Shown here: positions 7,251 through 41,161 of the stretch, piece by piece
How the letters are laid out: every line of letters starts with the position of its first letter
How positions within the stretch are numbered: position 1 is the first letter of the stretch
Origin: Basidiobolus meristosporus CBS 931.73
Lineage: Eukaryota > Fungi > Basidiobolomycota
Direction of reading: 5' to 3'
DNA: 41,161 nt
Assembly: GCA_002104905.1 (NCBI GenBank)
Contig: MCFE01000737.1
Coordinates: 1-41,161, forward strand
Translations under genes and position numbers: made by a program
The notes under the pieces: generated by a model
What the model was told of the DNA's origin: nothing
What the model saw: only the letters and a program-made list of their open reading frames with translations
Database searches by the model: none

Positions 7251-7349
7251 AGTCATCTCCAGTTATTAGCAGCAACAGTGGTTATACCTATGGATAATTT
7301 GCACTTTGGTAGGCTTATCTTTATTTGATACCTCTTCAAGTTGCTGCCA

Positions 7350-14878: not shown

Positions 14879-16270
14879 AACACCTCTGAAAATTAAAGGG
14901 GTATCTTGTTGGTAGTCTTTTACTCCAATCACCAAGTATTTATGAGTACTTACAACAATGGAGCAGTGCGTTTGGTGAAACCAACGAAATTCCAACCCAA
15001 CAAACAGAAGCATGAAACTTGCCTAAAGCCTGATGCCACACATTAAAAGCATTCTCGTCGCACCAGCTTCCACCGCACCATTGGCATATTAAGTTATTTA
15101 GGTAGCACGTGCATCAAAGGTGGAAGGTAGAGTGAAGATTCAAATAGATAGAGATCACTGAGACCCAAAGGATCAGCAATCTCTGGGTAGAATTCAAGCA
15201 CGGTTAGTGGACGGGAGATTTTCTTCGGAGCCGAAATAGGGAAGAATGGACCAGAGTTGGGCGAAAAAATACAAGCCCGCTCATAAGCCCTCTCGCCAGA
15301 TCCTATGAGGTTGCCGAGTATTGTTTCAAGTGTTTATGCAACCACATTCGATTCCAGACACCGAGCATATATATTCTGTTAATAGGGCTGGCGTGGGAAT
15401 GCTAGTCGAATTTCATGCTGTCATGCGTCATGTCTGATTCAACGCCGACAACGTGATCTTGCTGATTAACTTAACCAATTAGTGGCTCAATCCTATCACC
15501 TATGTGCGTTTGTTGATTAACCTGCAACTTCTAGTTTAAATCAATGCCCAAGACCCCGGTATCAAGAACTCACCTCCCCCCCTCACCTCTAGGCAGTTTC
15601 GATAGTCCATCTTCTAGGGATATCTCTGGTTAGCTAGGCTTGCCTCTTACATAAACTATTTTAGAGAGGAAACGAAGGGATTCAAGTGAGTAGACACCTA
15701 TTTTTTAATTTATCTGGGTGTAGCCATTATGTGCCCCACACAAGTGTGTTGCCACCTGTTTGGTTCACGTTGGATCAGAACCGAAAAGACGACCTGTGTG
15801 CATTGAGAGCAACCGTACCTCCCAAATTACTGCGTACCTTTATGTTCTCGTGAACCAAAGCACGTGAAAAGTCGACTTCTCTTATCTTTCTGATTGCTGG
15901 AATTTGAGAGAGCCGGTTAAAGGTTACGTCGGTTGCTTCTTTTACCTCTTGCTTTACTTCTTGAAACTGACGTGATGGTTGGGCCAGAAATTTATCCTTC
16001 AACTGAGCGGTTTTCCTTTATTTTAGCGACGGATTGACCTCTCGCCAGCGACTCAACACTACACAACCCTCGATGAACCGACAGTGTGAGTTTTCCCCAG
16101 TTGGCCAGCCAAGGGAGCTGGCCAAACAGTTCTCCGCCGTTCACCTTTAAACTCACCAGGCTTACTTTTATTAAGTTAACCCACACATACTATCGAGCAA
16201 ATCACCAACACCAACACCAGCCTCAACTGCCCCCTCCTACTCTCCCCTCTCTACGCTAAGCACTTCCCAC

Positions 16271-18180: not shown

Positions 18181-19797
18181 ATGTTGTCACATCCGAAAAT
18201 TCTAGTTTCCTTGGGTCTGGCCATCACTCTCCCCTTGGTAACCGGCGATGTCACCTTTCACGTGACGGGCTTCCCGGAGAAGGATGGGTGCGAGTTGGGG
18301 GTAGTGGTGAATGACCAGTGGACTCGGTTGTCCACCACGCCCGAGGCATTTCCCCTTTGGAGTGGCCAAGTATCGGGTGTGGATACCCCATTAGAGTATC
18401 GCTACGGTGTGTTGGATGAGGCGGGGAATGAGATAGAGAGGGAGAGTTTCACGCGAACTTTAGGCGACGGAAATCAGACCAAGAACGAGTTCTTCGACCG
18501 ATCGAAAACACTGGTCAAAATCCCGGATATCCCCAATGTGTACGCCCCATGGGCATTCGACAGGCCGGCGATATTTGAAGACGGGATGCTAGGTACCATT
18601 CACCTAACCGCTGATCAGGACCAGGTGGACAGCATCCACGAAGCGCAGGATGATCCCCCTGATATAAAGGTAAGCATGAGGTTTGTGCACCCGGACTTCG
18701 CCGTCTCGCTAGAGCATGTTGGTTGGGGGATCAGTGGGCAATCCACAAGAGAGTTCGCCAAGAAGTCATATAAATTGAGCTTCAAGCAGTCCGGGGATTT
18801 CCTCTCCGTTGGGTCCATCAAGTTAAGGGCGGAGGAAACCGATCCGACCATGATGCGGGAAAAGCTGTACCTCGACCTGCTGCATTCCCTCGGCGTTGCC
18901 GCGATACAAGCGAACTGGGTCCGCCTGTATGTGAACCGCAAGCCCGTAGGCCTATTTACAATGACCGACGACATCGAGGCCCCATTCCTCAGGCGTGTGT
19001 TCCATGATGGTGATCTGAAGGCGCCAACCGGGGTAGAATTCGAGTGCAATGCCATCGAAGTCACCAACGAGGCCAACTTAGTCTATCACGGTATGGACGA
19101 GGATCATTACGACTTCACCGATGTCTATGTCATCAAGGAGGCACCAGAAGGTGATGCCGCGGCCAAGGCTGCTTTAATAGCTTTTACCAAAGCCATCCAT
19201 GATTTCCAACCTACGACCGCCAGCCCGAGTGAGATGTCGGAGTTCAAAGCCGTTTGGGATTATCCTCATTTTCTTCGCGCCATGGGATTGGAATTCTTGG
19301 CCGGCGCCTGGGACAACTTCTGGTGGTCAGCCAGCAACTATCATCTGTACAAACCTCCCCACAGACCATGGTTCTTTGTCCCAACTGATTTTGATTACAC
19401 CTTTGGAAACGACTATCCAGATGAGAAGCTACGTTCCTACCAAAAGTTCAACCAAGGGAAGATGCGACCACCCCTTGACAAACTCCTGGCCATCCCCAAG
19501 ACCCGACACGACTTTGAGGAGATGCTGGAAAGAATCACTAATCATGCCTTCAATTCAGATGTTCTGGATGCACAGATTGATGGCTACCTGGAGTTGCTGA
19601 AAGAAGAGATAAGTTGGGATCGTGGTTTACCTCGGCTCACTTCGGGTAAGAATCTTCACTGGTCACTCAAAAGCGCGGTCGACAACATTGCCGGCCCAAT
19701 ACCTGGTAAGGAGTTCGGTCTGAAGCCATGGATCAAGGATCGAGTGAAATTACTTCATACTCAGCTAGGCCACCAGCATAACACCTCGGAACGATAG
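18181..19797 (+). CDS. cotH: Secreted CotH-family kinase-like protein
   Basis: Signal peptide; fungal CotH N-terminal 'FPLWSG...EYRY...E.F.R' module; SGQSTR..AKKSYK, IKLRAEETDPTMMREKLY and PTDFDYTFG motifs. Confidence 0.9.
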   Translation: MLSHPKILVSLGLAITLPLVTGDVTFHVTGFPEKDGCELGVVVNDQWTRLSTTPEAFPLWSGQVSGVDTPLEYRYGVLDEAGNEIERESFTRTLGDGNQTKNEFFDRSKTLVKIPDIPNVYAPWAFDRPAIFEDGMLGTIHLTADQDQVDSIHEAQDDPPDIKVSMRFVHPDFAVSLEHVGWGISGQSTREFAKKSYKLSFKQSGDFLSVGSIKLRAEETDPTMMREKLYLDLLHSLGVAAIQANWVRLYVNRKPVGLFTMTDDIEAPFLRRVFHDGDLKAPTGVEFECNAIEVTNEANLVYHGMDEDHYDFTDVYVIKEAPEGDAAAKAALIAFTKAIHDFQPTTASPSEMSEFKAVWDYPHFLRAMGLEFLAGAWDNFWWSASNYHLYKPPHRPWFFVPTDFDYTFGNDYPDEKLRSYQKFNQGKMRPPLDKLLAIPKTRHDFEEMLERITNHAFNSDVLDAQIDGYLELLKEEISWDRGLPRLTSGKNLHWSLKSAVDNIAGPIPGKEFGLKPWIKDRVKLLHTQLGHQHNTSER

Positions 19798-19875: not shown

Positions 19876-20526
19876 TTAGTTGTTGAGATATCCGGCCAAT
19901 GCTACCGCAACAACACTCAATACAGTCAGTGGATAGAAGTTCGATTCTCCGGCGTTAGAATGGTTGTTGTTAGTTGGGGTCGGGTTTGGATTGGCTGTTA
20001 CTTGGGTGGTTGCTACTGGCTGGGCTGGAGTGTTTCCAGCATTGTTGCCATCTCCTTCGCTGTGGGTTGCCTCTGGGGTTGGCTGTGGGCTTGCAGGAGT
20101 TGGGTTATTGTGATCATTGCCAGCGTCACCGCCGTTGGCGGGTGTATTGTTACCATCGTTATGGCCGGTACCATTCGGATCATTGGCATTACCATTACCA
20201 TTGCCATCACCATTATGATCGGCGGGATTGGCACCGCCATTATGATCATTGGGGTTACCACTACCATTGTGGTCATTGGGATTACCACTACCATTGTGGT
20301 CATTAGGATTACCATTGGCATTGGGGGCATTATCTCCATTGCTGCTACCGCCACCATTGCCGGCACCACAATATGCGGTTCCAGTGCCACAGAAGCCCCA
20401 AGTAGAACAGCATGAGCCTGCGGGGCATTCCACTCCATTACCACAAGTGCCGTCCAAGCTGACCGCAGCCTGAGAAAGGGAGGCCAAAGAGGCAACGAGA
20501 GTTACGGTTACGAGGGAGAATTTCAT
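19876..20526 (-). CDS. Secreted, probably GPI-anchored protein with an N-terminal hevein-like CBM18 chitin-binding module and N/G/D/H-rich repeats
   Basis: Signal peptide; CG...C....CCS.WGFCG....YCG; low-complexity linker; hydrophobic C-terminal tail after SNAG. Confidence 0.85.
   Translation of the reverse strand: MKFSLVTVTLVASLASLSQAAVSLDGTCGNGVECPAGSCCSTWGFCGTGTAYCGAGNGGGSSNGDNAPNANGNPNDHNGSGNPNDHNGSGNPNDHNGGANPADHNGDGNGNGNANDPNGTGHNDGNNTPANGGDAGNDHNNPTPASPQPTPEATHSEGDGNNAGNTPAQPVATTQVTANPNPTPTNNNHSNAGESNFYPLTVLSVVAVALAGYLNN
20210..20317. repeat. 27-bp coding tandem repeat (NPNDHNGSG-type units)
   Basis: About 3-4 units of ccattgtggtcattgggattaccacta, seen directly. Confidence 0.75.
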
Positions 20527-24483: not shown

Positions 24484-24972
24484 TCAGTTCTGGCAGTATT
24501 GGACATGCCAATGGTTCCCCTCGTTGAGATAGAAGTTTCCTGCACTGGAGACCCAGTACTTCTGCCCGTTGGAGGTAGTGCTAGGACCTCTCATGTTCTT
24601 CTGGATGTAGTTGGTAAGGCAAGCCTTCATTCTGAGGTCGACGGCTTGTCCCAAGGCATGGAAGGAAGTCTTCCCGTGGGGATAGATCTCGGCGGCCCCG
24701 GTGACTACCACAGGACACCCACTGCCCAACATGCTCTGAAGACCGACCACGGCATTCACGGTGGACACCTCCATCCCGGTCAAGCAAGTTTGGTCGACGT
24801 TTGCGTTGCGGTCTTTGCAACCAAGGTTCACCGAAATCCCACTTCTCGAAAGAACGTTCCTGGGCTCCTGCTCGTTAGTATAGCGAGCAGTGGGCTGATG
24901 GCGAGGGTTACATTCAAAGGCCATGGTTGCGCCGATGAAACCGAGGAGAAGGGTGGAGATAGCGGCTCTCAT
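24484..24972 (-). CDS. Small secreted M15/LAS-type (Hedgehog/DD-peptidase fold) Zn-metallopeptidase-like protein, copy 1
   Basis: Signal peptide; SFHALGQAVD (SxHxxGxAxD, H-x6-D) and HWH (HxH) Zn-ligand motifs; several Cys; TATAAATA at 25018-25025 (minus strand). Confidence 0.75.
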   Translation of the reverse strand: MRAAISTLLLGFIGATMAFECNPRHQPTARYTNEQEPRNVLSRSGISVNLGCKDRNANVDQTCLTGMEVSTVNAVVGLQSMLGSGCPVVVTGAAEIYPHGKTSFHALGQAVDLRMKACLTNYIQKNMRGPSTTSNGQKYWVSSAGNFYLNEGNHWHVQYCQN

Positions 24973-25910
24973 TGCGAAGTTGAGTTGGTGGTGCTCGGCA
25001 ACGATGAGAATCGTACATATTTATAGCCAAGCACTAGGTTTCATTAGGCTTTCAGAACTTCCCACCACTGAAATGGTACTGCATGACGCAGCTAGATGCT
25101 TGTAATATTATGAGAGTCTTCTCGCTATTGGGTATTTGCAAAAGTCAATGGTCTGGGATTCTGTGTAGCTTAAGCTGGTTAGTAATAAACACTGTGAACT
25201 TTGGTGCGATCATCTCCGGGCACATAGATGCGGTTGACGAACCTAATGATTGCGGCTTCCTAGGTACACGTGCGTTACTTTTGTTTCTGTCCATCTGATT
25301 CGAAGCATGGAAAGTTAAATGGGTAGAGTGCTAAGGCTCAACTGGTTAGAATCAACACAATCAGCGAACCAAACGTTTTGTGGAACCATTCGGATAAAGT
25401 CCACTATATCGCTTCGTGTATGATTCTCATCATCAATGGAACAATCTTCAGGATTTTGAGATATTATCGGCTTCCCTGTTGTGGGTAATGATCATCGTAC
25501 TACCACCCCAAGTGCGAAGTTCTGGTGCAGTAGAGCTAGAAACGAAATACTGAAATTGTTTTTACGCTCTCTTCCTAAATTAACCACTCACAGTCGGAGG
25601 AAATATCTATTGAGTTCTGCCTCTATTATAGCTAGAATGACGATAGTTTATCGGTCGCAGAGGGCCAAATTTCCCACCCAACTTCTTGTAAAACCGGGCT
25701 TCTCACAATATCTATTAGATGGAAGTTTGCTTTGACTTTGTTCCATAAACGCTATCCTACGTATGTTCTCAAATATAGAAAAAGGAAATATACTAGGGTG
25801 ATACACAATAGGTGCATCAAGATGGAATCTTAACTTTATTTAGCATTCCATTGTTTGTGTTGCAAGGGTTGTCTCATTTCCCAAATCCAAAATTCATTCC
25901 TGTAGCCGAC

Positions 25911-26399
25911 TCAGTTCTGGCAGTATTGGACATGCCAATGGTTCCCCTCGTTGAGATAGAAGTTTCCCGCGCTAGAGACCCAGTACTTCTGCCCGTTGGA
26001 GGTAGTGCTAGGACCTCTCATATTCTTCTGAATGTAGTTGGTAAGGCAAGCCTTCATTCTGAGGTCGACGGCTTGTCCCAAGGCATGGAAGGAAGTCTTC
26101 CCGTGGGGATAGATCTCGGCGGCCCCGGTGACTACCACAGGACACCCACTGCCCAACATGCTCTGAAGACCGACCACGGCATTCACGGTGGACACCTCCA
26201 TCCCGGTCAAGCAAGTTTGGTCGACGTTTGCGTTGCGGTCTTTGCAACCAAGGTTCACCGAAATCCCACTTCTCGAAAGAACGTTCCTGGGCTCCTGCTC
26301 GTTAGTGTAGCGAGCAGTGGGCTGATGGCGAGGGTTACATTCAAAGGCCATGGTTGCGCCGATGAAACCGAGAAGAAGGGTGGAAATAGCAGCTTTCAT
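25911..26399 (-). CDS. M15/LAS-type secreted Zn-peptidase-like protein, copy 2
   Basis: Protein identical to copy 1 except R2K. It lies 1427 bp from copy 1, and the upstream flanks are also homologous. Confidence 0.75.
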   Translation of the reverse strand: MKAAISTLLLGFIGATMAFECNPRHQPTARYTNEQEPRNVLSRSGISVNLGCKDRNANVDQTCLTGMEVSTVNAVVGLQSMLGSGCPVVVTGAAEIYPHGKTSFHALGQAVDLRMKACLTNYIQKNMRGPSTTSNGQKYWVSSAGNFYLNEGNHWHVQYCQN

Positions 26400-27273
26400 T
26401 GCGAAGTTGAGTTGGTGGTGCTCAGCAATGATGAGAATCGCGCATATTTATAGCCAAGTGTGCAACATATATCAGGGCACTCTCGAAACTTCTCGATGTA
26501 GTAACGAGCACAGCATGGCTCAACAATATGCCTGTAGTATTATGAGGCATTTCCCGCTATGGGGTGGGTGATAAAAATGATTGAGTCAGTTATTAATAAA
26601 CATCAGAAATCCTGCTACGATTCACTCCAGGTACAGGAAAGTGATAAATGAATGGGCTAAATGACTGCGCACATATACCGGGCGCTCTCAAGCACATCTG
26701 TGGGACCTGGGCTTCTACCTATATAATTCGAAGCAGGTATTTATGGAAGCGTAACTGTTGGAGTGCCGGAACCGAACTAATCATGCCCGGTGTAATGGAT
26801 AGGACTAGGAGTAAAATGCTTGCCTATTATTGGAGTCAGTGAACTTCACTTTGTCGTAAACATTAATTCACTCCCATCGTGACTCATCATATCAATCGAA
26901 TAAGAAAATTATGTGAAACAATTCGGATAAACTCTAGTGTATCACTTCGTGTACATTTCTCTTAAATGATTGAGCCATATCCCAGAGTTAGCAATGCTAC
27001 TAGCATTCCCAGTTTGGGAAATGATCAACGAATTACCACTACACGTGGGTAATTCTGGAAGATCTTGATCCAAATTGGGATGACCATCTGAATGTACCCG
27101 GACTCGAATTTTTGTGCAGCATCAATTAGCAAACTACCTGCACCTTGAAGCAGAAATTTGGTGACTGCGTAAAACACAAACTATCGCATCGTAGTCACAC
27201 GTACCAAGCTAAAATATCTAGTTTTCAATTTATTAACATGCAAGTTATATGCTCAAAGATATTGCTTTTCGGT

Positions 27274-27901
27274 TCAACAAGCACCTAAGTCAGCCCATGC
27301 GTCAGTGCTACCAGGGGCCTGGCCTTGTGTCCACCACCTGGCCTGCCACAAGTGGTCACCATAAATAACCTTGGCAGATTCGGAGTAGGCAGTGTCTGGG
27401 CTCCAGGCCAGCACCCCGTCACAGATACCAGGGTTAGGAGTAGAAGTGGGGCTGAGGCTCGATGTAGGGGAAGTCACCTCTGGGCGAATGGTGATGGTTG
27501 GTCGAGCATCAAGCAAGTCCGTGCCATCGTACTGGCCTTGGTATGGGAACTCAGGGATTGTAGGGTATCCTGGCAGGTTTGCGACCAAGAGTTTCGGGCC
27601 ACTTATGTAGCCCTCGTCTGAGCCCTTGATCTCGATATCGGCACAGTTCATGTAGTATTCACGGTTGCCCACCTTGTTGATCCAAGCCCAAGCGAAGACG
27701 ACATTCTTGCTGGTGCCAGCCGACTTGGGAATAGGCACCGAATAGTCCAGACTGCCGATCAGACAATCTTCGTAGACAGTCTTCAGAACGGCAAAAGTCT
27801 TCCCTTCGTCGTAGGACACGGCAAATTGACAATGACCTCCGCTGTGAGTCGCGACTCCGCCAAGCTTGACCTGGATCTCCTTGCCAGCCTCGACAGTCTG
27901 G
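27274..27901 (-). pseudogene. 5'-deleted copy of the AA11-like LPMO-CBM5/12 gene
   Basis: Near-identical to 30428-31055 but cut at ~27901 and joined to sequence homologous to ~31480 onward. Signal peptide and His1 are missing. Confidence 0.8.
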
Positions 27902-28832
27902 CAAGTTACCTCACTTCAGAAAAGGGGGTGATCTATCCTTTGTAGTTAGAGTCAGATGAATAGCCTGGAGTGAGGGTAGATCCGTCACTATACCCAGAAA
28001 GTGTAAATACTCTTTCGAGAGTGCACTAAGCCGGAGAAGGCCATCTCCAAATGGAGAATGCCTTGATTAAATGTATAGGATAATCGACCGAAAATAGTTG
28101 GAGCGATCGGCACTTCGGACCGCAAAAATTCTTTTACTTCTTCTCTTCCACGCTGCACGTTTCCGTTTGAATCCGTATCTTAGGATTGTTTCAGGATGTA
28201 GATACCATTGTGTAAGCATGAACTAAGCTGCTATTGATTATTCAGGAACAGAAGCTAAGATTTTATATAGAACTTCAGCACAATTCTTGTGAGTCTTCAC
28301 ATGAATGAATAGTAAGGTACCGGTGATGCTATGAATTGGAGATAATGTATTCCGGCATTGGAGAGGCGGCTAGGAATTTCCAAAGCACAGGTATACACAT
28401 AACGCTTCGAGGAAAAAATACGTAGAAGCATATTGCCTACATAGCGTTTCTTCGTTTATTTTGGTAGGAAACAATAAATGTCAATACCGCGCTTTTTGGT
28501 CGCAAGTGAATTTCATCGAACTGGAGCCGCATTGTCGGCTTTAGATTGAGCCAACTAACAAATGGCACTCGCCAAAATTTTTTAGGATGCTTTTACAACT
28601 CAGATTCAGGACCTGGATTGATTGGAAGCAAAACCAATATATACAAATCACGGATCCGATCTAAAATAGATCTGGCTTATATTTTTTTAATGTTTCCAGA
28701 ATGTGCCACCGTGATACAAAATGGATTCATCGGAAGCATCAAGATGGAATCTTAACTTTATTTAGCATTCCATTGTTTGTGTTGCAAGGGTTGTCCCATT
28801 TCCCAAATCCAAAATTCATTCCTGTAGCCGAC

Positions 28833-29250
28833 TCAGTTCTGGCAGTATTGGGCATGCCAATGGTTCCCCTCGTTGAGATAGAAGTTTCCCGCGCTAGAGA
28901 CCCAGTACTTCTGCCCGCTGAAGTTCTGCTAGGGCTTCTCATATTTTTCTCAATATAGTTAGTAAGGCAAGCTTTCATTCTGAGGTCGACTGCCTGTGCC
29001 AAGGCATGGAAAGAAGTCTTGCCATGGGGGTAGATTTCGGCGGCTCCGGTGACTACCATGGGAAACCCAATGCCTAGCATGTTTTGAAGGCAAACTAAAA
29101 CATTCTGGTGGACACTTCCATCCCGGCCAAGCAAGTTTGGTCGACATTTGCGTTGCGGTCTTTGCAACCAAGGCTCACGGAAATACCGCTTCTCGAACGT
29201 TCCTGAACTCTTGCTCGTTAGTGTACCGAGCGGTGGGCTGATGGCGGGGG
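28833..29250 (-). pseudogene. M15/LAS peptidase-like pseudogene, copy 3
   Basis: Homologous to copies 1 and 2; lacks the signal peptide and has frameshifts and a stop. HALAQAVD and HWH are retained. Confidence 0.75.
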
Positions 29251-30427
29251 CTCCACTTAGGATGACTCAACTGCGTACTTGTAGCGTTCCCCCTCTAAGA
29301 GATGGTTGCATAAAATGATTCTGTGTAGCTTGAGCTGGTTATTCATAAATGCCATAAATTCTGAGGTAATCCACTCCGAGGACAGCGAAGCGGTAACTTG
29401 ATGAGCCCAATGACTGCGAGCTTCCCAGGTACACATGCGTAACTTGTATTTTCATCTACCTGATCTGCAGTGCGGGAAGTTTATCGGGTCGAGTGCTGAA
29501 TCTAGGGCAGGCACACTTAACTTTGTCTTGAATTGTCCGTCTACTTCGTGAATAACCCCGTATGCTGATCGAAAGTAAGATAGCCATTTAGATGGGTCGC
29601 TTCGCGTATATTTCTCATCATCGATTGAACAATATTTCGGAGTTCGGGATTCCCCGTTTGAAGAATGATCATCGTATAATAACTCTGTGTCGAATTTTGG
29701 AATACCAAGATACACAATAAGGCTATAGGAAAGAAGCAATGTCCCAACGCTCCTCTTCCTACATCATAAACATCTAGTTAAGTATAACCCTTATTGGGGT
29801 CAACCCTAACTACGACAAGATTGCTAAGTCGCTTTTTATATTTGATTGGTTGAATGAAAATTTGTGCCCCAGAAGTAAGTTCAACCCTCACTTTACTCCT
29901 TGAATGAAATCAAATAATTCCACAACACTCTCCTAGTCTGCTGTTGGGAGATATACCTGAGCGCACTATGAGGGGCGATATACCCAAAGTAAGGGGAAGC
30001 GGTTAACAAATCTATTTATACATTTATGGGCTTAGAATCGCTGAATCTTAAGAAAACCAGTACTTGCTACGAAGTAGCTGGAAAACACCTGACCTCTACA
30101 TACGAACAGTGCATTTGTGAATATGTATTAGCGCTAAGCATCATCGCTTTTAGGATATTTCATTTTCTATGTTGCCACAAAAAATTGTTCTGTGAGTACA
30201 CCAGGCTCTTGATATTGATAGCAAGTTAAATCAGCTTCTTTCCAGTCCAAACTCATCGTTATTAACCAGAAACTTCATAAATATAAAAATATTAAGTCAT
30301 GTGCATTCTACCACCGCCTGAAATACATCAAAAATGATATTTGTGTCAATATCTAGGTGTTCATTTGTTTGCTAGTTTTTAATTCATTCACAAGTAAACT
30401 ATATGCTTGAAAATGTTGATTTCCGGC

Positions 30428-31252
30428 TCAACAAGCACCTAAGTCAGCCCATGCGTCAGTGCTACCAGGGGCCTGGCCTTGCGTCCACCACTTGGCCTGC
30501 CACAAGTGGTCACCATAAATAACCTTGGCAGATTCGGAGTAGGCAGTGTCTGGGCTCCAGGCCAGCACCCCGTCACAGATACCAGGGTTAGGAGTAGAAG
30601 TGGGGCTGACGCTCGATGTAGGGGAGGTCACCTCTGGGCGAATGGTGATGGTTGGTCGAGCATCAAGCAAGTCCATGCCATCGTACTGGCCTTGGTATGG
30701 GAACTCAGGGATTGTAGGGTATCCTGGCAGGTTTGCGACCAAGAGTTTCGGGCCACTTATGTAGCCCTCGTCTGAGCCCTTGATCTCGATATCGGCACAG
30801 TTCATGTAGTATTCACGGTTGCCCACCTTGTTGATCCAAGCCCAAGCGAAGACGACATTCTTGCTGGTGCCAGCGGACTTGGGGATAGGCACCGAATAGT
30901 CCAGGCTGCCGATCAGACAATCATCGTAGACAGTCTTCAGAACGGCAAAAGTCCTCCCTTCGTCGTAGGACACGGCAAACTGGCAGTGGCCACCGCTGTG
31001 GGTCGCGACTCCGCCAAGCTTGACCTGGATCTCCTTGCCAGCCTCGATAGTCTGGACAACCTTTCCTTGCTCGTAGCCCTTGCATGGATAGATGCCCAGA
31101 GGATCGACCATGTTGTAGTCAGGAATGCCGGTGAACGTGGGGTTGTATTTTGAGTGACGCGGAGGCGGCTGGATCATTTCCATATGGGCTGTGACCACTG
31201 CAGCAAGACTGGCCAAGGCAGCGCCGGATTGGAGAAATTTGGAGAAAATCAT
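30428..31252 (-). CDS. AA11-like lytic polysaccharide monooxygenase with a C-terminal CBM5/12 chitin-binding module
   Basis: ATG at 31252. The signal peptide ends AVVTA|H, giving an N-terminal His. THSGGHCQF supplies the second His; WAWINKVGNREYYMNCADI; a P/T/S linker; AW...AY....V.Y.D.LWQAKWWTQG..PG. Confidence 0.85.
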   Translation of the reverse strand: MIFSKFLQSGAALASLAAVVTAHMEMIQPPPRHSKYNPTFTGIPDYNMVDPLGIYPCKGYEQGKVVQTIEAGKEIQVKLGGVATHSGGHCQFAVSYDEGRTFAVLKTVYDDCLIGSLDYSVPIPKSAGTSKNVVFAWAWINKVGNREYYMNCADIEIKGSDEGYISGPKLLVANLPGYPTIPEFPYQGQYDGMDLLDARPTITIRPEVTSPTSSVSPTSTPNPGICDGVLAWSPDTAYSESAKVIYGDHLWQAKWWTQGQAPGSTDAWADLGAC

Positions 31253-32299
31253 ACTGGAGGTCAACTCGTTGATGGGGTACACAAGAGAGTAGCCCAAGTA
31301 TTTATACACACAGTCTGGCCACCCGAGGCTCTCAGCACCACCACGGCGACCAGTGGGTATGGGCATATCCACACACAACCACCCATTGTGAATGTTACAC
31401 CGAACTTTACTTATTCCAATAAGTCAGAGCTCCACTCTAAGCCGCTAGAAGACCCTATTCAATTCAATAAGAAAAAATACTGCGTAAATTACTTCAGTTC
31501 AGAAAAGGGAGCAAAATATACATGGCAGAGTCAAATGAATGGTCTAGAGTGCGGGAAAACTCACCACTATACTCAGAAAGTGTATATATCTCCCTTTGGT
31601 GGAGGGGAGGGAAGGGCTACTTAGCTTCCAAAAAGATTGGACTCGTTGGAGTAAATGTCCAGGACAATCGGCCGAAAATAGCTAAAGAGATCGGCACTTC
31701 GGACTCCGAATATTCTTCTATTTCTGTGTACACCCATACTTCACACTCCATCCTACCAGTGGCTTGCTATTTTGCTCGTATAAATCAGTATCCTTTTTGC
31801 CACCATATGTGGAGTAGCTTATTCCGGAATAGAGATCGTCAGGGAATTAGGGTCGGCAGTTAGAGTTGTTGAACCTACCAAAACCACCATTATAAACGTT
31901 TGCGAGTGTAAATATTAGCAGCATATCATGTCAGTGATAAGATCTGAGGTAACCGGGAGACATGGTGCTCGTAAAGCCACTTAGATTATACATTTACCAC
32001 CAAGAGGTCTTTCACGAAAGCGGCGTACCATGTAATTTGGCACTTGGTGTGAATGAATTTACATTCTCGGAGTACGATTGAAAATCCGAACCTTCGACCG
32101 CGGTAGGTATATGTTTACAATATACACATCAAACACTATGCTACTCCCCAGAGAAAAGTGCAAAGACATTACAGCATCCTATCTACCAGAGAAACCACTC
32201 GCTTGAGTCACTCTTTTCACCTAAATATTCATCGCTTCTCGTACATAAATTCTAGTTTCCAATTGTTAAATATTTATTTCCGCTTGTAGATTGTAGCTC

Positions 32300-32467
32300 T
32301 TAACGGCATGCGCGCATGGGGTTGGAGCTGCTGACTGCGGCACACTTGTTGGAGCAACACTGGCTGTTGCTGGTGCAAGAATAGCCTACCTTCTTACAAG
32401 CGGCTTCGGACTGGCTGGCCAGGAGAACGGTCATGAGAGCACCGAGGAGGAATGTCTTGAAGTTCAT
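32300..32467 (-). CDS. Secreted inhibitor-cystine-knot (knottin) peptide, copy 1 (55 aa; not in the ORF track)
   Basis: Hand translation: MNFKTFLLGALMTVLLASQSEA|ACKKVGYSCTSNSQCCSNKCAAVSSSNPMRACR*. Spacing C-x6-C-x5-CC-x3-C-x11-C. TATATAAA at 32532-32539 (minus strand). Confidence 0.85.
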   Translation of the reverse strand: MNFKTFLLGALMTVLLASQSEAACKKVGYSCTSNSQCCSNKCAAVSSSNPMRACR

Positions 32468-33743
32468 TGCGGATGTCTTTGAGAGTGGAGTGATTTTTCT
32501 TTTGATGGGGAGTTTACTAGCACAAAGGTCATTTATATAGTAATCTCAAGGGGCAATGGATCCTGAGTTGGTGACCAATATGCAGTTCGGGTGGGAATGG
32601 ATACCGCTTGATTTGGTTGTTCTACGTTACGCGTGAATACGTGTGTTCAGGTTAAAGGCGAATTTAAGCCTTGTGGACGATAGAAAGAAGAAAAACGGCC
32701 CTTGGCGTGTGTAGACCATCATCATGTATTAATGTAAGAATCTAGTACAGTATTTCACAGACGGCTGATATAGAGAATGTAGCTAACCTCACCCACCAGT
32801 GAAAGAATGGGTTAAATTGCGGAGCACAACGACAAGGTCTTTGTAGTAATTAGGGATATGACACAAGGCTTTGAAATGAGTCAGCAGTTGGAAATTGCTG
32901 CATACGATAGTAGTACAAGGTGCAACCCTTATCGGATTGAAATCGTTTCATGAGATGTATCAAGATTGTTTACTAGTTCCCATGAGTCATACGGCCCTAG
33001 ATGATTCTTACTTCCACAAAGAATAGCTTAAATTCCCATGTGCAAAAGGAGTCTCCATGTTCTTTACTGGGATTAGGATATAGCCATTACATATATAATA
33101 TTTAGTATCTATCCTTCTTCATCTTCTCAGCATATTCGAATAGCCTCTATTAAGCACAGTAATCGATTATTTTCAAAGCAAGCGCATATTTTTATTGCGA
33201 GATGTCCACAAAGGCAAATATTGAGTTGATTTCCGCATTAAACCTATTCTTTGTTGGGGTATATAATATATAATCACATTCTAAGTCACTTGACTTGTTG
33301 TCGAACGTAATGGGGTTATCGTAGGAAGGACACTGTGGGAAAAAATAAGAATTAAGGAAAGCTTCATGGCAGCATCGGCTTTCCGAAGTAGCGGAACAAT
33401 AAATGGTACGACGCATGATACTGCCTATTCATAACGGTATCGACATTCCGAGGTAGTGATTATCAACTAGTGGCACAACACACAGATGGACTGATCCTCA
33501 GTGACCGAGGATGGTGATCATTTCATATTTAAGCTAGTTTCTATGGTTATTAAATGTAGCTACTATTAAGCACGGCAGTCCCATATTTTCATAATGCATA
33601 ATCATGAACAAGCAAGAAAACTTCAACAGTAATGGGTGCAATGCGTCTTTTCTACCACTTTATTTTGACGAAGGCAAGTAGATTTATTACTCTGAAAAAT
33701 GGTAGAATATAGTTAAAGGGCAGACTTCTGTAGGATTTCCAGT

Positions 33744-33911
33744 CTAACGACAAGCACGCATGGGGTTGGAGCTGCTGACTGCGGCACACTTGTTGGAGCA
33801 ACACTGGCTGTTGCTGGTGCAAGAATAGCCTACCTTCTTACAAGCGGCTTCGGACTGGCTGGCCAGGAGAACGGTCATGAGAGCACCGAGGAGGAATGGC
33901 TTGAAGTTCAT
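33744..33911 (-). CDS. Secreted knottin peptide, copy 2 (55 aa)
   Basis: Same mature peptide as copy 1, with T5P in the signal peptide and synonymous changes in the last codons. Probable 37-nt 5'-UTR intron at 33922-33958 (GTGAGT...CTTAC...CAG) and TATAAAA upstream. Confidence 0.85.
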   Translation of the reverse strand: MNFKPFLLGALMTVLLASQSEAACKKVGYSCTSNSQCCSNKCAAVSSSNPMRACR

Positions 33912-34809
33912 TGTTGAGGACCTGCAAAGTAAGTTTTTTCTGGTGTTGAAAAACTCACCAGCCTTGAGGCCACTTTTATAGCAATTGAGGTGAGAAAATC
34001 CAGCGTGAGAGCCATCTGCATTGTGATTTCACTCTGTATCACAGGCCGTTGGTAAGCAGCAAAGTGTACAGCGGGGACGCGACTAGCTGAGCTTGCTACA
34101 AGTACATTGGACAAAGGCAATGAAATGCTCAAGGATCCTGAAAGTATACAGGCTGCGTTTTATTTTAATATTTAGTATCTCCAATATCCTTGTCCTCCTT
34201 GAATGAAAGACAGTATTCTCGTTTATAGTCGGCTCTGTTCCACCAATATCACACACCAAGTGAAGTTAAGCGGTAAAATGCATATTCATATACGACGAGT
34301 TTTGCCAGGGAGCACCATGCTTTACTGATGGTAATAGTATTGGTCTGTGTGGCTTTAGATGGAGGAGAGAACGGCTACTATTGTAAACACAATAGTAGGA
34401 ATCGTTGTTTTAGGATATATCAGTGTAACAAAATACAATCAATAAGTAGTATTAAGTATTGACTAAGCCTATCTATCAACGACCAAGAGGATTGCACTAA
34501 CAATATCAACGATTAAGAGGATTGCAATAAGAGTTTATTGGGAATTAGGGGAACATATTACCGCAAACCATCAGAGGTAGCCACAATCCTAGGTTTGCAA
34601 AGGCAATTCCGTAAATCTGGCGCTTCTGCTTTGGTTCGACTAATTTTCCCTTGAACTGGTGGGAGTCTCGGAAAAATCATGTCGGCTAAATGTCTGTACC
34701 ACACGAGTTCAACGTGGCTTAATGTTTCAATCTCTTGGTTCTACCCAATATTGCATTATTTGTCCCCATATCAGGTAACTCACACTATTTCTGGATCCAA
34801 ATGTATACC

Positions 34810-34899
34810 ATGGCTCTGTAAGCTGCGTGATGATGGCTCTGTAAGCTGCGTGATGATGGCTCTGTAAGCTGCGTGATGATGGCTCTGTAAGATGCGTGA
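34810..34899. repeat. 23-bp minisatellite, ~3.9 copies (atggctctgtaagctgcgtgatg)
   Basis: Three identical units plus one partial unit with a single substitution. Confidence 0.9.
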
Positions 34900-35892
34900 C
34901 CATATCAGCTTTGATCCACATCAGACTTGACTCATCCATCAAAGAAACTAAAATATCATTCAGATCTGCAGATAACATCCAGGATATTCGACACATATGA
35001 CAACACTCAAATAAGGACTTTGTGAGTGATGCACATTTCCGCTATTTAGCTATAAAAGTGTAATTATCCTGGGAAAATTCTCAGCCTTCGTATGGAAGTG
35101 GGACCAGAGCTCTAAGACAAGACTCTCATTACCGACAATGTATCTTGAGAGCTGTATTGACTCTGCGTGATATTAGTGGAGTTACGCGGTGCATGCGTTA
35201 GGTATGACCATCCGACACATGCTTGGATGTTTTGCCTGATGATCATTCTATGGTGAGTTAGAGAAACCAGCGGTCAAGAAAAATCAAAAGGATAAAACAC
35301 TACTAGCACACCATCGTCAAGCCAAAACAGGTAGTTTTTGATTCTCTTTATATTTCCATAACCTCTCGAATTTCACTTCATTTTCTTCCGCTAGGGCTCA
35401 TAATGACGATCATCGCTGTCAATACACTAGCCGCATCCCTTGAATTTTAAGGTACTGGAGCTAGTACTCTCTACAGGAAATGAAGCCACTCAACTGTTAT
35501 CTTAACTGTGATTGGTGAAGACCGACTTTTGCTGTGACACAGACATATTTGGCGGCTGGTGCTACCTGAACTCTGACTGTAAGTGCAAGAATATAGTTGA
35601 AGTAGCTGTTGATAGGTACATTGATTCCCGCAAGCTTTACGCTAATAATTTGGTTCCTGACTGGTAAAGAAAATAATATGCCCAGCTTATATTATAAAAT
35701 CATTCATTTGTACCTTGCCATGAATTCTTACAGACATATGTAAAAGATATTGCATTTGCTCTGTTGGAATGAGCCTCATAATTCTTGTGGTGACTGAGAG
35801 TGCCTATGGTTCTAGCAGGCCCTATAATATATTATGGAATGAGTAGCTTTGCTCCATATCACAATGTAAAGTATCCCCTGTGTTTCAATTAT

Positions 35893-35962
35893 TTAGGGGA
35901 GGGAAAGTCACCAAGGTAGGTGAAATATTTATTTGAGTTCAGCCAAGACTAACTAAAAATAT
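35893..35962 (-). mobile_element. Short 3'-terminal relic of the telomere-associated retroelement family
   Basis: TTAGGG followed by the shared end motif (AAAGTCACC-loop-GGTGAAAT..TTTATTT), then (TTAGGG)2 at 35963-35974. Confidence 0.65.
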
Positions 35963-37560
35963 TTAGGGTTAGGGGGGAGACAGTCACCAACAGGTGAAAT
36001 CTTTATTTCAGTTGAAATAAAGAAGCCAGTGCTACTGTTGTAGCTTTGATAAAAGAATGTGTAGCTGAGGGGAGTTTGTAGGTAAGTTAATAAGAAGTGA
36101 TGATAGTTCTTCAGTGCTCAAGACACTGTTCAGTGGGAAGGGGGGTAGCAAGAGAGGTAAGAATGACTTGTGAACAACATTAATTAGGGGAATGCAATAA
36201 GGATTGATATTCATCATAAAGGGAGTGTGCTGCTGCAGATATTGCTGCCAAACGTCTGTCAAGTCCTTCAGGTAGGCCAGCTTGGGTTTTTCTGAGTGCA
36301 GAATATAATGAGCAAACTTCTTGACTTCATGATCTCCAAGTATAGTTCTCCAGCAGGAGCCAGGTGTAGTATGGTGTGTTCTCTTCCATGCCTTAATCAG
36401 TGGGTTGTTGCAGTGGTGAAGTCTGAAATATAATCTGGTTCTAAGGTAGAGAACTCTGACCTTATAGGGCATAAACCCAAAAGCACCAAGAATAGCATGT
36501 CTGTAGGGGCATTCAGGCAAATGAGGCACCAAGGAAGTAATGCACCATACTGCAAACTTGTCAAGCTTAGTGCAGTCTCTAGAAGTAAGAGAGAGAAGTG
36601 GTAAGCCAAATTCCAGGACAGGGAAGACAAACTGCTTGAGTAGAAGGAGGCAGCTGGAAGCTGAAGTTGTAGGAGGGGTACCTGTCTTGCCAGGATTATT
36701 CTCTTCTTCAGGTGTGCTCCAGAGTCTAGTCCAGTAGGAAGGAAAGGAAAGCCAAGATATGTAGCAGAAGCCTGGGCAGGTAGAGTGGAGCTCTCCAAGT
36801 TGATAGGGCAGCCCAAAGGTACTGTCTTTGCAATGGAAAGCTGGAGATTATTCTTCTGCAGATACTGGTGGATGGTCTGGGAGTCTTGTTGCACATTGTA
36901 GGAGGATATTCTGATGTCATCAGCAAAGAGGGTACCAGACAGTCAGCTGAGAGTCTTGGGAAGTCAATCAAGAAGATGGCAAAGAGTATAGGACCAAGCA
37001 CAGAGCCTTGAACCACTCCATTAGGAGCTGAGAACACAGCTGATTGCTCACTTGGGTGCAGAATTCTTGCTTGTGGATCCAGAAACAGAGACCTGACAAG
37101 GAGGGTGAGAGAGGTACTGGAAAAGCATTGCAACTTGGACCAAAGCAGATTTCTGTCAACTGAATCAAAGGCCTTAATAATATCAAACAGAACAGAGGGA
37201 TACTTGCACTGGAGAGAGTGATCTTGGCTAAGTATGACTGCATATTCCAAGGAGAGGCCAGGAACAAAGCCAAACTGTGCAGGATGAAACTTGAGGGAGT
37301 CCAAGTAGAGCTCTTGAGCAAGCAGAAGCTCAAGCACCTTTCTGCAGGTGGGCAGCAGAGATATTGGCCTGTAGGAGCTAGGATCCAGGTGCTTTCCTTT
37401 ACCCTTGTACAGTGGCAGAACATTGGCAAAGGACTGTTGTATCCAAGAGAAAGTGTAATAAAACTCTTGAATGGTTTAACTGAACCAAAGGGACAATTAA
37501 GTGCAGAATCTTAGAATTGTCAGAGAGTGGCGGAAATATTAGCAGAAAAATTCTGATCTA
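35963..37560 (-). mobile_element. LINE-type non-LTR retrotransposon (RT domain, frameshifted) whose 3' end abuts (TTAGGG)2
   Basis: PLYKGKG..DPSSYRPISLL, QFGF, LFDIIKAFDSV, GVVQGSVLGPILF, LFADD (after a frameshift) and TYLGFPF. The ORF ends at 36032, followed by a ~55-bp 3' UTR with AATAAA and a hairpin. The 5' limit is uncertain. Confidence 0.85.
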
Positions 37561-37878
37561 ATATTGGTCTTGGATATAGCTGGGTTGGCTATAAAGACAA
37601 TGATATTTGTTTGCTAGGCAGGCTAGGCTTGGTGTTCTTTGGAGTGCTAGATATACTAGGCTTGGATAGAAACTAGAACGGAATTGTTGGATTCTTATTT
37701 TTGCTGAGACAGAATCTTAATTTTGTTGAGATACACACTAAACCAAAAGGTTCAGTAAACTTTATTTATACTTTTCTGATCAAGTTGAATTAGTAAGCAC
37801 CAAGGGACTGGATTGATTGAGATAAATTTGGGTGTTCATAGGTGCATAAAATAAATGAAAATTACATCATCAATCAAC

Positions 37879-38131
37879 TGATGTCTTGGCAACTGCACCG
37901 TGGTTGGAGAGATCTCAGATGACTAATCACCTGGGAAGGCTTGGCAGATAGGTTGATAACGTAATGGCCATTTGAAAATAGATCAGGTGTGATAGCTAAA
38001 AATAGATTCTGAGGTGGGATAAAATAAACTGTAACTGGGATTTGTTATGTTTGGGTTAGGGAAAATCAGTTAGGGTACTAGATTTTCAAACGGAGTAAAA
38101 TTGGCTAAGTTTTAAATGTTGATGCACAACA
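37879..38131 (-). mobile_element. 3' LTR of the chromodomain Gypsy element
   Basis: Immediately follows the pol stop and the purine-rich GGAAGGAAG tract on the minus strand. TGTTG...CATCA termini. Homologous to 8502-8754. Confidence 0.8.
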
Positions 38132-40016
38132 TCACTTCCTTCCAGAAGAGGAGTTTTTTGATACCTTCTGGGTTCCTCTGCGGCTCCAATACTGATCAAT
38201 AATGGCAACATCATCAAAGTTGGTGTAAGGTTCCCAGGTGTTGTGTTTGGCATCATAGCCTTTCCACTTGACTAAATAAAGGCAATTTGGTTCTTCTCCA
38301 TCATGGTCCACAATAGCTTCAACTTCATAGGATTCCGAAGTTACTGGGTCTTGAGAAATAAGTTAGAGTGAAGAAGGTGGAAAGTTTTTGGGTAGCAGTG
38401 CTCCAGTGTTATCCTGAAGTACATAAGATCCTCCAGTAGTGTGTCTGACAACCTTGAATGGTCCTTCATACTTGGGGTCAAGCTTAGATTGCCGGATTGG
38501 ATCTAGTGTCATGACATATGACCCATCTGGGAAGCTGCTGTTCCTGTGTCTTGAGGCGTATGTTGAAGTCATCTTTTGCTGAGAGGCCTTACTTCTGGCA
38601 CTGATAGCAGGGTAGACAATGTTGGTAAGGTACTCAAGCCGGTTCTTTAGCTTATCTGTATTCAAACTTGCTAACTCTGTATTCTGGTAGTCTCCAAAGT
38701 GGTTGTATCTTCTTCCAAACATCAAGGAAAATGGTGTTGATCCATGTAGAGCGGCAATTTTGGTGTTGATAGCATATTGTACAGTTGGAATGTACTTGTC
38801 CCAATTCTTCTTGATACCTTTGATAGATTTCCTGATGATGTTCACTGAGGTCTGAACATGTCTTTCAGCCAGTCCATTAGCTTTGGGATGATATGGAGTG
38901 ATCAGACGGTGATCAATGGCGCTATTCCGGCAAAGGGCTGTGATCACGTGATTCACAAATTCTGTTCCATTATCCGATTGAATGACCTTAGGGAATCCAA
39001 ATAGGCAGAAGAGCTTGAATAGTTCTTGTGCAATAGTGGCAGCATACTTGTCTGGGATAGTTTTGAGGAAGACAAAACGTGTGCAGACATCCACAATTAC
39101 AAAGAGGTAGTGATTACCATCATCACTAGTGGTGAAAGGTCCAGCTAGATCAATTGCAATATGATCCATAGGAAGGCTTGCATGGATGGGGCTCAAAGGG
39201 TGAAATCCATGGCGGCTGATATTGTAAAGTTGACATTCTCTGCACGACTTGACAAATTCTAAGCAGTCAACTTTGATATTTGGCCAGTGATATCCATCAG
39301 AGTGTAGCTTCTTCATAAGTGTGTCAGCTCCAAAGTGGCCAAGTAAATGACTCCTCTGTATCAATGTTTTCCTTTGTTCTTCAGGTGGGACTTTCCAAGT
39401 TGCTGAATCCAGTTGAGGAATTATTTTGGAAGTTGTAGAGAGTTTACTGATTACATCAGTAATCACATGTCCCTCCCAAGGTGAAGTTGGAAAAAGTCTT
39501 GACAGGTGGTCAGGAAGGATGTTGAGAATTCCTGGGCGATGAATAACTGTATATTCATAATCAAGTAGAGTATCAAGCCAGTTGGTAAGTATTGGAGTCA
39601 GAGTCTTCTGAGTGTGGATATAGACAAGGGCTTGGTGGTCAGTGTACAAGGTAAAAGGATTACCCCATAGATACTGATGAAACTTCTTCAAGGCAAAGAC
39701 TATGGCAAGTAGCTCCTTCTTGGTAGCAGAGTAGTTTCTCTCAGCAGGTTGTAGGGACCTGGCTTGGAAAGAGATCCAGTGAGGCGGATTTTGGTCTTCA
39801 TCTTGATAGAGGACTGCCCCTAACCCAACATTAGATGCATCCGTAGCAACAACAAAGGGCTTAGTAAAGTCTGGGTAGGATAAGGTGGGTGCTTGTGGAA
39901 GCAGTTGGCAGAGTGACTCAAAGGCTTGGTCATGAGTCTTGTTCCAGGCTGAGGTGAGATCAGGGCTATGGTGCAATGCATCTAAAGGGGCACTCAATGA
40001 GGACATGAGTGGTATG
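38132..40016 (-). mobile_element. 5'-truncated Ty3/Gypsy (chromovirus-type) pol: RT connection, RNase H, integrase, chromodomain
   Basis: VVATDAS..GLGAVL, ELLAI, HLLGHFG...CRECQ, DLAGP, QSDNG, NGLAER and YEGPF. After an in-frame TAA at 38363 the frame continues YEVEAIVDH...YLVKWKGY....NTWEP to a TGA at 38132. The RT catalytic core and gag are absent. Confidence 0.9.
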
Positions 40017-40509
40017 TTAGGGGGGAGGAAAGTCACCAAGTGGTGAAATCTTTATTTACTTATGACAAGTATCTAAAGAAGCCAAGTTAATCTGAAGTTA
40101 TTCCTAGAAAGCTAGGTCTGAGAGATATCTTCCTGGTAAGCCAGGTCTAAGAGTTGAGAGGCTGAGTGGTACTATATTTCCTAGTTAGCTAGGTCTGAGA
40201 GAGGTTTCCTGGAAAGCCAGGCCTGAGAAGTGAGAATCTGAATATATCTGAGCTAAGTTATACTGGTTTGCGGTAGCTGAATTGTGGCCGGAATGGCCAG
40301 TAGACTGGGGGAACTGAGAGGAATTTCTGGGCGATCACTGGCCAAATTTACTAGGCAAATCTGGCCAATTAGCATTTCAAGGATTTCAGCCAATCAGAGC
40401 CTTTACTTTGCCCGATGGTTGATCAAGCCATCTCCCAATGAGCACACATCAATTTATTGATCAAATTTTGCTGGATCCAGGATTTGAACCCACAACCATG
40501 GGTATGGAA
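40017..40509 (-). mobile_element. 489-bp non-coding SINE-like subtelomeric unit, copy 1
   Basis: Starts (plus strand) with TTAGGG and the same end motif as the LINE; ends with a tRNA-like 3'-half (minus: GGTTGTGGGTTCAAATCC). Confidence 0.65.
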
Positions 40510-40998
40510 GGGGGAGGAAAGTCACCAAGTGGTGAAATCTTTATTTACTTATGACAAGTATCTAAAGAAGCCAAGTTAATCTGAAGTAATTCCTAGAAAG
40601 CTAGGTCTGAGAGATATCTTCCTGGTAAGCCAGGTCTGAGGGTTGAGAAGCTGAGTGGTACTATATTTCCTAGTTAGCTAGGTCTGAGAGAGGTTTCCTG
40701 GTAAGCCAGGCCTGAGAAGTGAGAATCTGAATATATCTGAGCTAAGTTATACTGGTTTGCGGTAGCTGAATTGTGGCCGGAATGGCCAGTAGACTGGGGG
40801 AACTGAGATGAATTTCTGGGCAATCACTGGCCAAATTTACTAGGCAAATCTGACCAATTAGCATTTCAAGGATTTCAGCCAATCAGAGCCTTTACTTTGC
40901 CCGATGGTTGATCAAGCCATCTCCCAATGAGCACACATCAATTTATTGATCAAATTTTGCTGGATCCAGGATTTGAACCCACAACCATGGGTATGGAA
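40510..40998 (-). mobile_element. 489-bp SINE-like unit, copy 2, directly capped by the telomere
   Basis: Tandem copy of 40021-40509, with about 8 substitutions counted by eye. Confidence 0.65.
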
Positions 40999-41161
40999 GG
41001 GTTAGGTAGGGTTAGGGTTAGGGTTAGGGTTAGGGTTAGGGTTAGGGTTAGGGTTAGGGTTAGGGTTAGGGTTAGGGTTAGGGTTAGGGTTAGGGTTAGG
41101 GTTAGGGTTAGGGTTAGGGTTAGGGTTAGGGTTAGGGTTAGGGTTAGGGTTAGGGTTAGGT
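40999..41161 (+). repeat. Telomere, (TTAGGG)n, ~27 units, with one proximal variant (TTAGGTAGGG)
   Basis: Seen directly; runs to the window end with the G-rich strand 5'->3' outward. Confidence 0.98.

Follow-up and report, generated by a model that had tools for sequence, protein, structure and literature searches.

A subtelomeric gene pair for a conserved, predicted secreted knottin peptide in the fungus Basidiobolus meristosporus

The 41,161-bp scaffold MCFE01000737.1 of Basidiobolus meristosporus CBS 931.73 (assembly GCA_002104905.1), which in its entirety is referred to here as the window, carries on its minus strand two intronless genes, copies A and B (Table 1), each of which would encode a signal peptide followed by the same 33-residue peptide with six cysteines. 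Judged from sequence comparison, these are very probably real genes for a secreted knottin, i.e., a peptide built on the inhibitor cystine knot (ICK). They are a genus-restricted addition to a known structural class, and the genes are already databased as “hypothetical proteins”. The explanation that best covers all observations is a functional secreted knottin family with an antimicrobial-type role, to which a probability of about 0.5 is given. According to this proposal, a classical signal peptide would be cleaved after SEA on entry into the secretory pathway, releasing a 33-mer that would fold as an ICK; the mature peptide would be kept uniform by strong purifying selection together with ectopic gene conversion limited to the coding sequence (CDS); and, in litter, dung and the gut, it would work as an antimicrobial of the host-defence type by binding, outside the cell, a conserved target that other organisms present, the likeliest being an anionic microbial surface.

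A constrained mature peptide behind a variable signal peptide

An earlier note on this DNA had described two 168-nt minus-strand open reading frames (ORFs), each encoding a signal peptide plus an identical 33-aa six-cysteine peptide, and both the coordinates and the direct reading of the DNA agree with that description. The predicted signal peptide comprises 22 residues: the n-region (MNFK) is basic, the hydrophobic core is 13 residues long, with Kyte-Doolittle 9-mer means reaching 2.4, and the SQSEA end is polar. It is joined directly to the 33-mer without a propeptide. The mature peptide (33 residues, approx. 3.44 kDa, 3446.0 Da when reduced, net charge +5) has the cysteine framework C24-x6-C31-x5-C37C38-x3-C42-x11-C54, which is constant in all copies of both species known to carry the gene. 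Although the two copies differ at five bases of the CDS (positions 13, 156, 159, 162 and 168), their 33-mers are identical: position 13 gives Thr5 versus Pro5 inside the signal peptide, positions 156, 159 and 162 (codons 52-54) are synonymous, and position 168 distinguishes TAA from TAG. Thus, as had been claimed, there is one signal-peptide change and the remainder is synonymous. The GC content at third codon positions of the knottin CDSs (0.70-0.71) resembles that of neighbouring genes, as opposed to the spacer (GC 0.39).

A word-indexed protein search returned a single cluster of relatives, from Basidiobolus ranarum, and running it with a mixed alignment added no other relative from the fungi. 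B. ranarum has four distinct 55-aa proteins on five loci and the 3' end of a sixth copy. All of its full copies are 168 nt long and intronless, they keep the frame, the six cysteines and the length, and they specify one mature peptide, which differs from that of B. meristosporus at three residues (Thr->Ser, Gln->Asp and Asn->Lys). Because Gln->Asp is balanced by Asn->Lys, the net charge is +5 in both species. The partial copy lies at the start of a B. ranarum contig (L004, 1-51), approx. 1.9 kb upstream of a complete one, bringing the minimum for B. ranarum to six copies and two tandem pairs.

Substitution rates between the species were computed by the Nei-Gojobori method, separately for the mature part and the signal peptide. 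In the mature part, the synonymous rate (dS) is 0.8-1.2 and the ratio of nonsynonymous to synonymous rates (dN/dS) is 0.04-0.06; in the signal peptide, dS is 0.31-0.42 and dN/dS is 0.55-0.73. The variable sites at codon positions 1/2/3 number 10/3/24. This selection pattern is strong evidence that the product is translated and constrained. The most conserved part of the peptide is the loop between the fifth and sixth cysteines (CysV-CysVI, ..NPMRA..), which is identical in all copies of both species. In conotoxin, spider-toxin and effector families, the signal is conserved and the mature peptide diversifies; the frozen mature part and variable signal seen in these comparisons are the reverse of that pattern. 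The suggestion in the earlier note of a conotoxin- or effector-like family is not supported by these rates, nor by the absence of a propeptide.

One further observation concerns codon 5, in the n-region of the signal (32453-32455 and 33897-33899 in the window, and the corresponding B. ranarum loci). It is the single site that varies among near-identical paralogues in both species, being Thr or Pro in this genome and Ser or Leu in B. ranarum.

The predicted fold

In the Pfam scan, no family reached its gathering score for the precursor. UPF0506 (PF11703), for which 23.2 bits are required, gave 19.8 and 20.8 bits, Conotoxin_I2 (PF17557) gave 16.2 bits against a cut-off of 27, Toxin_29 was also sub-threshold, and neither the conotoxin models PF02950 and PF08087 nor the calcin model PF08099 (Toxin_27) matched in that scan. 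A phmmer search against PDB sequences produced weak matches only, all of which were knottins.

The structural model was obtained with AlphaFold (AF2) from an alignment of 35 knottin-type domains (A3), the rows of which were picked by their Cys-framework pattern. It has a predicted local distance difference test score (pLDDT) of 90.9 and contains a C-terminal beta-hairpin (strands 20-24 and 27-32). The profile of the same alignment matched solved ICK toxins, namely Dg12a (6px7) at 4e-6, maurocalcin at 1.7e-5 and imperatoxin A at 2e-4. In a Foldseek-independent fold scan of 48,161 chains, all 35 matches at Z>=2 were knottins or knottin-like modules, with root-mean-square deviations (rmsd) of 0.5-2.8 A over 24-33 residues; the top matches were SOTI-III (Z 4.7, rmsd 1.6 A over 31 residues) and Aps III (Z 4.6). 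Foldseek, which was used for the identity of the matched proteins and not for significance, gave template modelling (TM) scores of 0.62-0.82 to maurocalcin, Aps III and atracotoxin, and nothing in the PDB at E<=0.001; the calcin match had Z 2.9 and TM 0.62. The feature search of the ESM Atlas (scores 0.76-0.82) provided leads only, and its fold search returned only generic knottin-bearing clusters.

The inhibitor cystine knot is the predicted fold, and the disulfide pairing that belongs to it, I-IV, II-V and III-VI with the last of these threading the ring, is likewise a prediction. The earlier assignment to the ICK knottins is therefore upheld by the framework and by the predicted fold, with its knottin-only matches, but not by the conotoxin, spider-toxin and UPF0506 models of Pfam, all of which stayed below their gathering scores.

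Probable copy homogenisation and the subtelomeric setting

The genes had been described as unannotated, which is true of copy B; copy A is called as a 55-aa gene in the MCFE01000737.1 record. Both precursor sequences are already present in NCBI, UniRef and EukProt, that of copy B because it is identical to the called copy A of a second scaffold. On that scaffold (MCFE01000324.1, locus L005), positions 6681-13207 form a 6.5-kb segment that is 98% identical to 29262-35811 of the window and contains the same tandem pair, of which again just one member is called as a gene. In total, the assembly holds four knottin copies in two haplotype-like segments. Either these twin segments are two haplotypes, or they arose very recently by segmental duplication of subtelomeric DNA. 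Past the twin segment, retroelement-derived sequence is common to both scaffolds in rearranged pieces, and short repeats near the telomere (window 35894-41155) are shared with L005 1-6687.

Pairwise alignment of copies A and B shows identity from 2-4 nt 5' of the ATG up to the stop codon. Outside these limits, similarity drops to shuffle level (z 1.4 for 117 nt upstream and -0.1 for 120 nt downstream), which bears out the claim of unalignable flanks. When both haplotype-like segments are considered, the only fixed differences between A and B are at positions 156, 159 and 168, so that, as regards fixed differences, A and B agree throughout positions 1-155, and outside the CDS nothing can be aligned.

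It appears that the simplest account of this pattern is ectopic gene conversion between old paralogues, which is considered probable. Conversion tracts would be limited to the CDS because they could start and be resolved only in the remaining homology. A recent duplication is less likely: as synonymous sites are near-saturated between the species, one recent enough for approx. 33 of these sites to be unchanged should have kept recognisable flanks, yet the flanks are unalignable. A cDNA-mediated copy is less likely as well, as it would have brought the untranslated regions along. Mosaic alleles were considered as proof of conversion and set aside, given that the differences of copy A between the scaffolds (positions 13 and 162) fit the 2% background divergence. 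In B. ranarum, the pair shares its flanks (z 71 and 31), with approx. 375 bp upstream and approx. 85 bp downstream still shared between the paralogues at approx. 90%, and homogenisation there would have been either wider or more recent than in B. meristosporus. Since every copy of a species yields a single mature peptide, the arrangement points to dosage amplification together with gene conversion; that is, the copies would serve dosage and not diversity. The pair would be a clean, small case of concerted evolution, in which homology, and hence conversion, is confined to a 168-nt CDS.

The promoter likeness of A and B is reduced to a TATA box at about -70 in both, in agreement with the earlier note; the TATAAAAG box is also found approx. 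55 nt 5' of the ATG in all five full B. ranarum copies. A “conserved 19-mer promoter element” was rejected because the pattern had been built from both sites themselves and the upstream similarity is at shuffle level. A 37-nt stretch of the 5' leader of copy B (33922-33958, minus strand, GTGAGT...TTTGCAG), situated between the TATA box and the ATG, resembles a very short intron; the twin segment reads TTTCCAG there, and copy A has nothing similar.

Table 1. Features of the window (MCFE01000737.1) and sites of the bacterial knottin-like module in other sequences
Feature	Sequence	Coordinates	Strand	Basis or remark
Copy A, intronless 168-nt CDS, 55 aa	window	32300-32467	-	ORF listing and direct DNA reading
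Copy A, predicted signal peptide	window	32402-32467	-	
Copy A, mature 33-mer	window	32303-32401	-	
Copy A, stop codon TAA	window	32300-32302	-	
Copy B, intronless 168-nt CDS, 55 aa	window	33744-33911	-	ORF listing and direct DNA reading
Copy B, predicted signal peptide	window	33846-33911	-	Pro5, not Thr5
Copy B, mature 33-mer	window	33747-33845	-	
Copy B, stop codon TAG	window		-	
Copy A, TATA box TATATAAA	window	32532-32539	-	72 nt before ATG
Copy B, TATA box TATAAAAG	window	33973-33980	-	69 nt before ATG
Copy A, AATAAA polyadenylation-type signal	window	32273-32278	-	22 nt past stop
Copy B, AATAAA polyadenylation-type signal	window	33683-33688	-	56 nt past stop; second AATAAA at 33659-33664
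Spacer between copies, 1276 bp	window	32468-33743		AT-rich, GC 0.39; no similarity to either copy's other flank
TTAGGG telomere repeats	window	41012-41155	+	knottin pair 7-9 kb from chromosome end
Retroelement ORF, reverse transcriptase	window	36726-37337		between pair and telomere
Retroelement ORF, RNase H and integrase	window	38363-40039		between pair and telomere
Neighbour gene, secreted protein with CBM5/12	window	30428-31378	-	weak AA9/LPMO_10 resemblance
Second tandem gene, ending in CBM5/12 chitin-binding module	window	27274-27819	-	weak AA9/LPMO_10 resemblance
Bacterial module	L008	2546-2635		
Bacterial module	L012	3007-3096		
Bacterial module	L020	2998-3087		
Bacterial module	L022	~1081-1155		
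Bacterial module	L042-L068	mostly ~3001-3090		

The scaffold ends in telomere repeats preceded by retroelement ORFs, and the knottin genes are therefore subtelomeric. On the telomere-distal side lie genes for secreted proteins, namely two with CBM5/12, one chitin-binding protein of the hevein type, one CotH kinase and a fragment of a GDSL lipase. The resemblance of the CBM5/12 tandem genes (those of the window and L002 13223-14020) to AA9/LPMO_10 is at E 0.002-0.02. For the tandem family next to them (24484-29250), Pfam returned no M15/LAS peptidase match on the ORFs examined. In B. ranarum, the members of the tandem pair are 1416 bp apart (compare 1444 bp here), and the pair adjoins an orthologue of the CBM5/12 gene, which is inverted in orientation. 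Within the same subtelomeric 40 kb, the ORFs at 5352-6239, 11668-12465, 14075-15013, 18181-19797 and 19876-20526 encode three S-adenosylmethionine-dependent methyltransferases, one protein with a CotH-kinase domain and one secreted protein of the hevein type that binds chitin.

Relatives, function and known systems

Besides Basidiobolus, all that an exhaustive profile search of 1.84 billion representatives recovered were proteins in which the knottin-type domain is repeated; they belong to the parasitoid wasp Microplitis demolitor (LOC103575328, LOC103569034 and LOC103577352) and to metagenomes (P0008-P0010). These secreted proteins have the same domain framework and several have a long last loop; they differ in carrying two to six domains each, in being of animal or unknown-eukaryote origin, and in a per-domain identity of 30-54%. 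Another candidate, P0007 (1473 aa), was rejected as a repeat artefact (CxKVGYRCSSDC repeats).

Pattern scans of metagenomes and GTDB genomes revealed a bacterial knottin-like module of approx. 30 residues at the extreme C-terminus of large secreted proteins. Its core is ...SCT-x-NSQCCSNKC..., followed by a last loop of 8 residues ending in KTC, a single basic residue and the stop. It is carried by proteases resembling trypsin, subtilisin and matrixin (Trypsin_2, S8 and M10; 250-1000 aa) and by an RTX protein, encoded in metagenome-assembled genomes of Thermoanaerobaculia, Vicinamibacteria, Holophagales, Myxococcales, Kofleriaceae, Phycisphaerae and Verrucomicrobiia, i.e., in the phyla Acidobacteriota, Myxococcota, Planctomycetota and Verrucomicrobiota. 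No matching model was found in local copies of Pfam or NCBIfam, and a literature search found no description of the module; widespread and apparently undescribed, it may merit a study of its own. As in the fungal peptide, the chain ends one basic residue past CysVI, and the cysteines are spaced identically as far as CysV; as many as 16 of the first 20 residues are the same in both. However, it is the terminal domain of a protease, whereas each fungal gene stands alone and has a start, a TATA box and a predicted signal peptide to itself, and its last loop has 8 residues against 11 in the fungal peptide.

Basidiobolus has been reported to have acquired bacterial genes (PMC7466969). Nonetheless, a transfer from bacteria was rejected as a conclusion. 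On the profile of the bacterial module, the peptide of this genome scores 36.5 bits and that of B. ranarum 27.8 (members 30.1-59.3, median 53.8), but on the profile of the eukaryotic multi-knottin proteins they score equally well or better (40.8 and 38.9 bits), and the bacterial matches had been selected with a pattern derived from the fungal sequence. As the profile scores show no bacterial preference and the pattern was fungal-derived, transfer is possible but unsupported, and a recent common ancestry of the fungal genes and the protease module of soil Acidobacteriota and Myxococcota by cross-kingdom transfer is held to be unlikely. If it were true, a bacterial prey- or substrate-targeting module would have become a free, dosage-amplified secreted peptide, kept uniform through CDS-limited subtelomeric conversion. 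In sequence, the nearest relatives are the multi-knottin proteins and the bacterial module, neither of which is clearly closer.

With regard to function, identical homogenised copies indicate dosage rather than an arms race, which fits a host-defence antimicrobial better than a venom-like toxin. The antimicrobial role, taken by itself, is tentative, its target above all, and falls somewhat short of even odds. Several points weigh against the proposal as a whole. The features of the peptide point no more to microbes than to animals or proteases, and the peptide is very hydrophilic, with no obvious amphipathic patch. Transcription is inferred from conservation alone, and gene conversion from a pattern in two to four sequences in which no event was observed. 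As for the fold, the rows of the structural alignment were chosen by Cys pattern, which partly builds in the knottin result, and the model from an unbiased alignment of three full-length sequences was helical and poor (pLDDT 60.7) and was discarded; the Foldseek E values (>=0.2) and the Z scores (<5) are weak in absolute terms, which is due to the peptide having only 33 residues.

An animal-directed toxin, modulating an ion channel or receptor of spore-carrying insects or of the amphibian or reptile gut in the manner of calcins, omega-atracotoxins and other framework-VI/VII knottins, is considered unlikely. The closest solved relatives of the peptide by profile and fold are indeed venom peptides (Dg12a, maurocalcin, imperatoxin A, Aps III and Hv1a), the calcin framework is within one residue in the last loop and has the same ...C-R end, and the distant relatives include the multi-knottin proteins of M. 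demolitor. However, fold resemblance is uninformative about the target, and venom and effector families present the opposite of what is seen here, where the mature peptide is frozen, the signal varies, the paralogues are identical and a propeptide is lacking. Moreover, Basidiobolus is not known as an insect killer but is described as an insect-dispersed symbiont of the herptile gut, and the earlier suggestion of a parasitic fungus does not fit a litter and gut-passage organism that is an occasional opportunist and not a specialised parasite (PMC9391592).

There is a slim chance that the peptide is a canonical serine-protease inhibitor acting through the CysV-CysVI loop, with Arg52 as P1 in the manner of SOTI-III, which would protect the fungus in gut passage or block the proteases of competitors. 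In SOTI-III, the inhibitory loop is found between CysV and CysVI and carries a P1 Arg (PMC3795654), a location that matches the invariant fungal loop with its single Arg. The SOTI-III-trypsin complex is the top fold match, and the related bacterial module is carried by secreted proteases. However, its Z of 4.7 is tied with those of spider toxins, there is no sequence similarity to SOTI/MJTI beyond the cysteines, and the single Arg stands two residues before CysVI, inside the predicted last strand. The P1 Arg of SOTI-III is presumably located about four residues before CysVI, in which case the register would differ from that of the fungal Arg.

An equally slim chance is given to an endogenous role as a cell-wall-associated or signalling peptide of the fungus itself. 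Such a role would explain the frozen sequence and the dosage homogenisation, and it is consistent with the very low mature dN/dS, the identical paralogues and the linkage to a gene with a chitin-binding module that is conserved across species. Nonetheless, no receptor, processing site or precedent is known for a knottin in fungal self-signalling, and a subtelomeric place among secreted enzymes is more typical of niche-interaction genes. Finally, the view that these are non-functional relics or chance ORFs, which might draw on their shortness (55 aa) and on the copy not called in the public annotation, is effectively refuted by the selection pattern, i.e., intact copies of equal length in two species (four here and five full ones in B. 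ranarum), third-codon-position bias and a mature dN/dS of 0.05 at near-saturated dS.

Few peptide scaffolds are as stable and as useful in pharmacology as knottins, and very few knottins are known from fungi; in the literature searched so far, no knottin was found in early-diverging fungi, nor any work linking Basidiobolus with knottins. The strong constraint suggests a specific, conserved target, and the family is short, easy to synthesise and confined to one genus. If the peptide proved to be antimicrobial or channel-active, a fungal branch would be added to a scaffold known mainly from animals and plants.

Among known systems, the ICK venom peptides (maurocalcin, imperatoxin A, Aps III, omega-atracotoxin Hv1a and Dg12a) provide the best profile and fold matches. 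They share with the fungal peptide framework VI/VII, the ...CCSxKC core, a length of approx. 33 residues, a cationic character and a beta-hairpin after CysV (predicted here), and it is the fungal source, the precursor without a propeptide, the conserved mature part and the variable signal that set the Basidiobolus peptide apart from them. Conotoxin O/I2 precursors have the same Cys framework, with the sub-threshold PF17557 match as its counterpart here, but they possess a pro-region, a conserved signal and a hypervariable mature toxin, so that Basidiobolus lacks the former and reverses the conservation of the latter two.

The Mirabilis-type plant knottins (the trypsin inhibitor SOTI-III and the antimicrobial Mj-AMP peptides) are secreted defence peptides from a signal-plus-mature precursor of the kind predicted here, and have a long CysV-CysVI hairpin loop; in contrast, their loop 2 differs, that of the fungal peptide being shorter (5 residues), the register of the Arg in the last loop would differ, and only the cysteines are shared in sequence. 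Within fungi, the first protein reported to have a knottin-like structure was MLP124266 from rust (PMC6889267). Like the Basidiobolus peptide, the members of the MLP124266/AvrP4 family are small secreted fungal cystine-knot proteins. However, they have a long disordered N-terminus and an extra helix of their own and no sequence relation to the Basidiobolus 33-mer, and they are fast-evolving effectors of plant pathogens, whereas the Basidiobolus peptide is strongly constrained and consists of the 33 residues alone.

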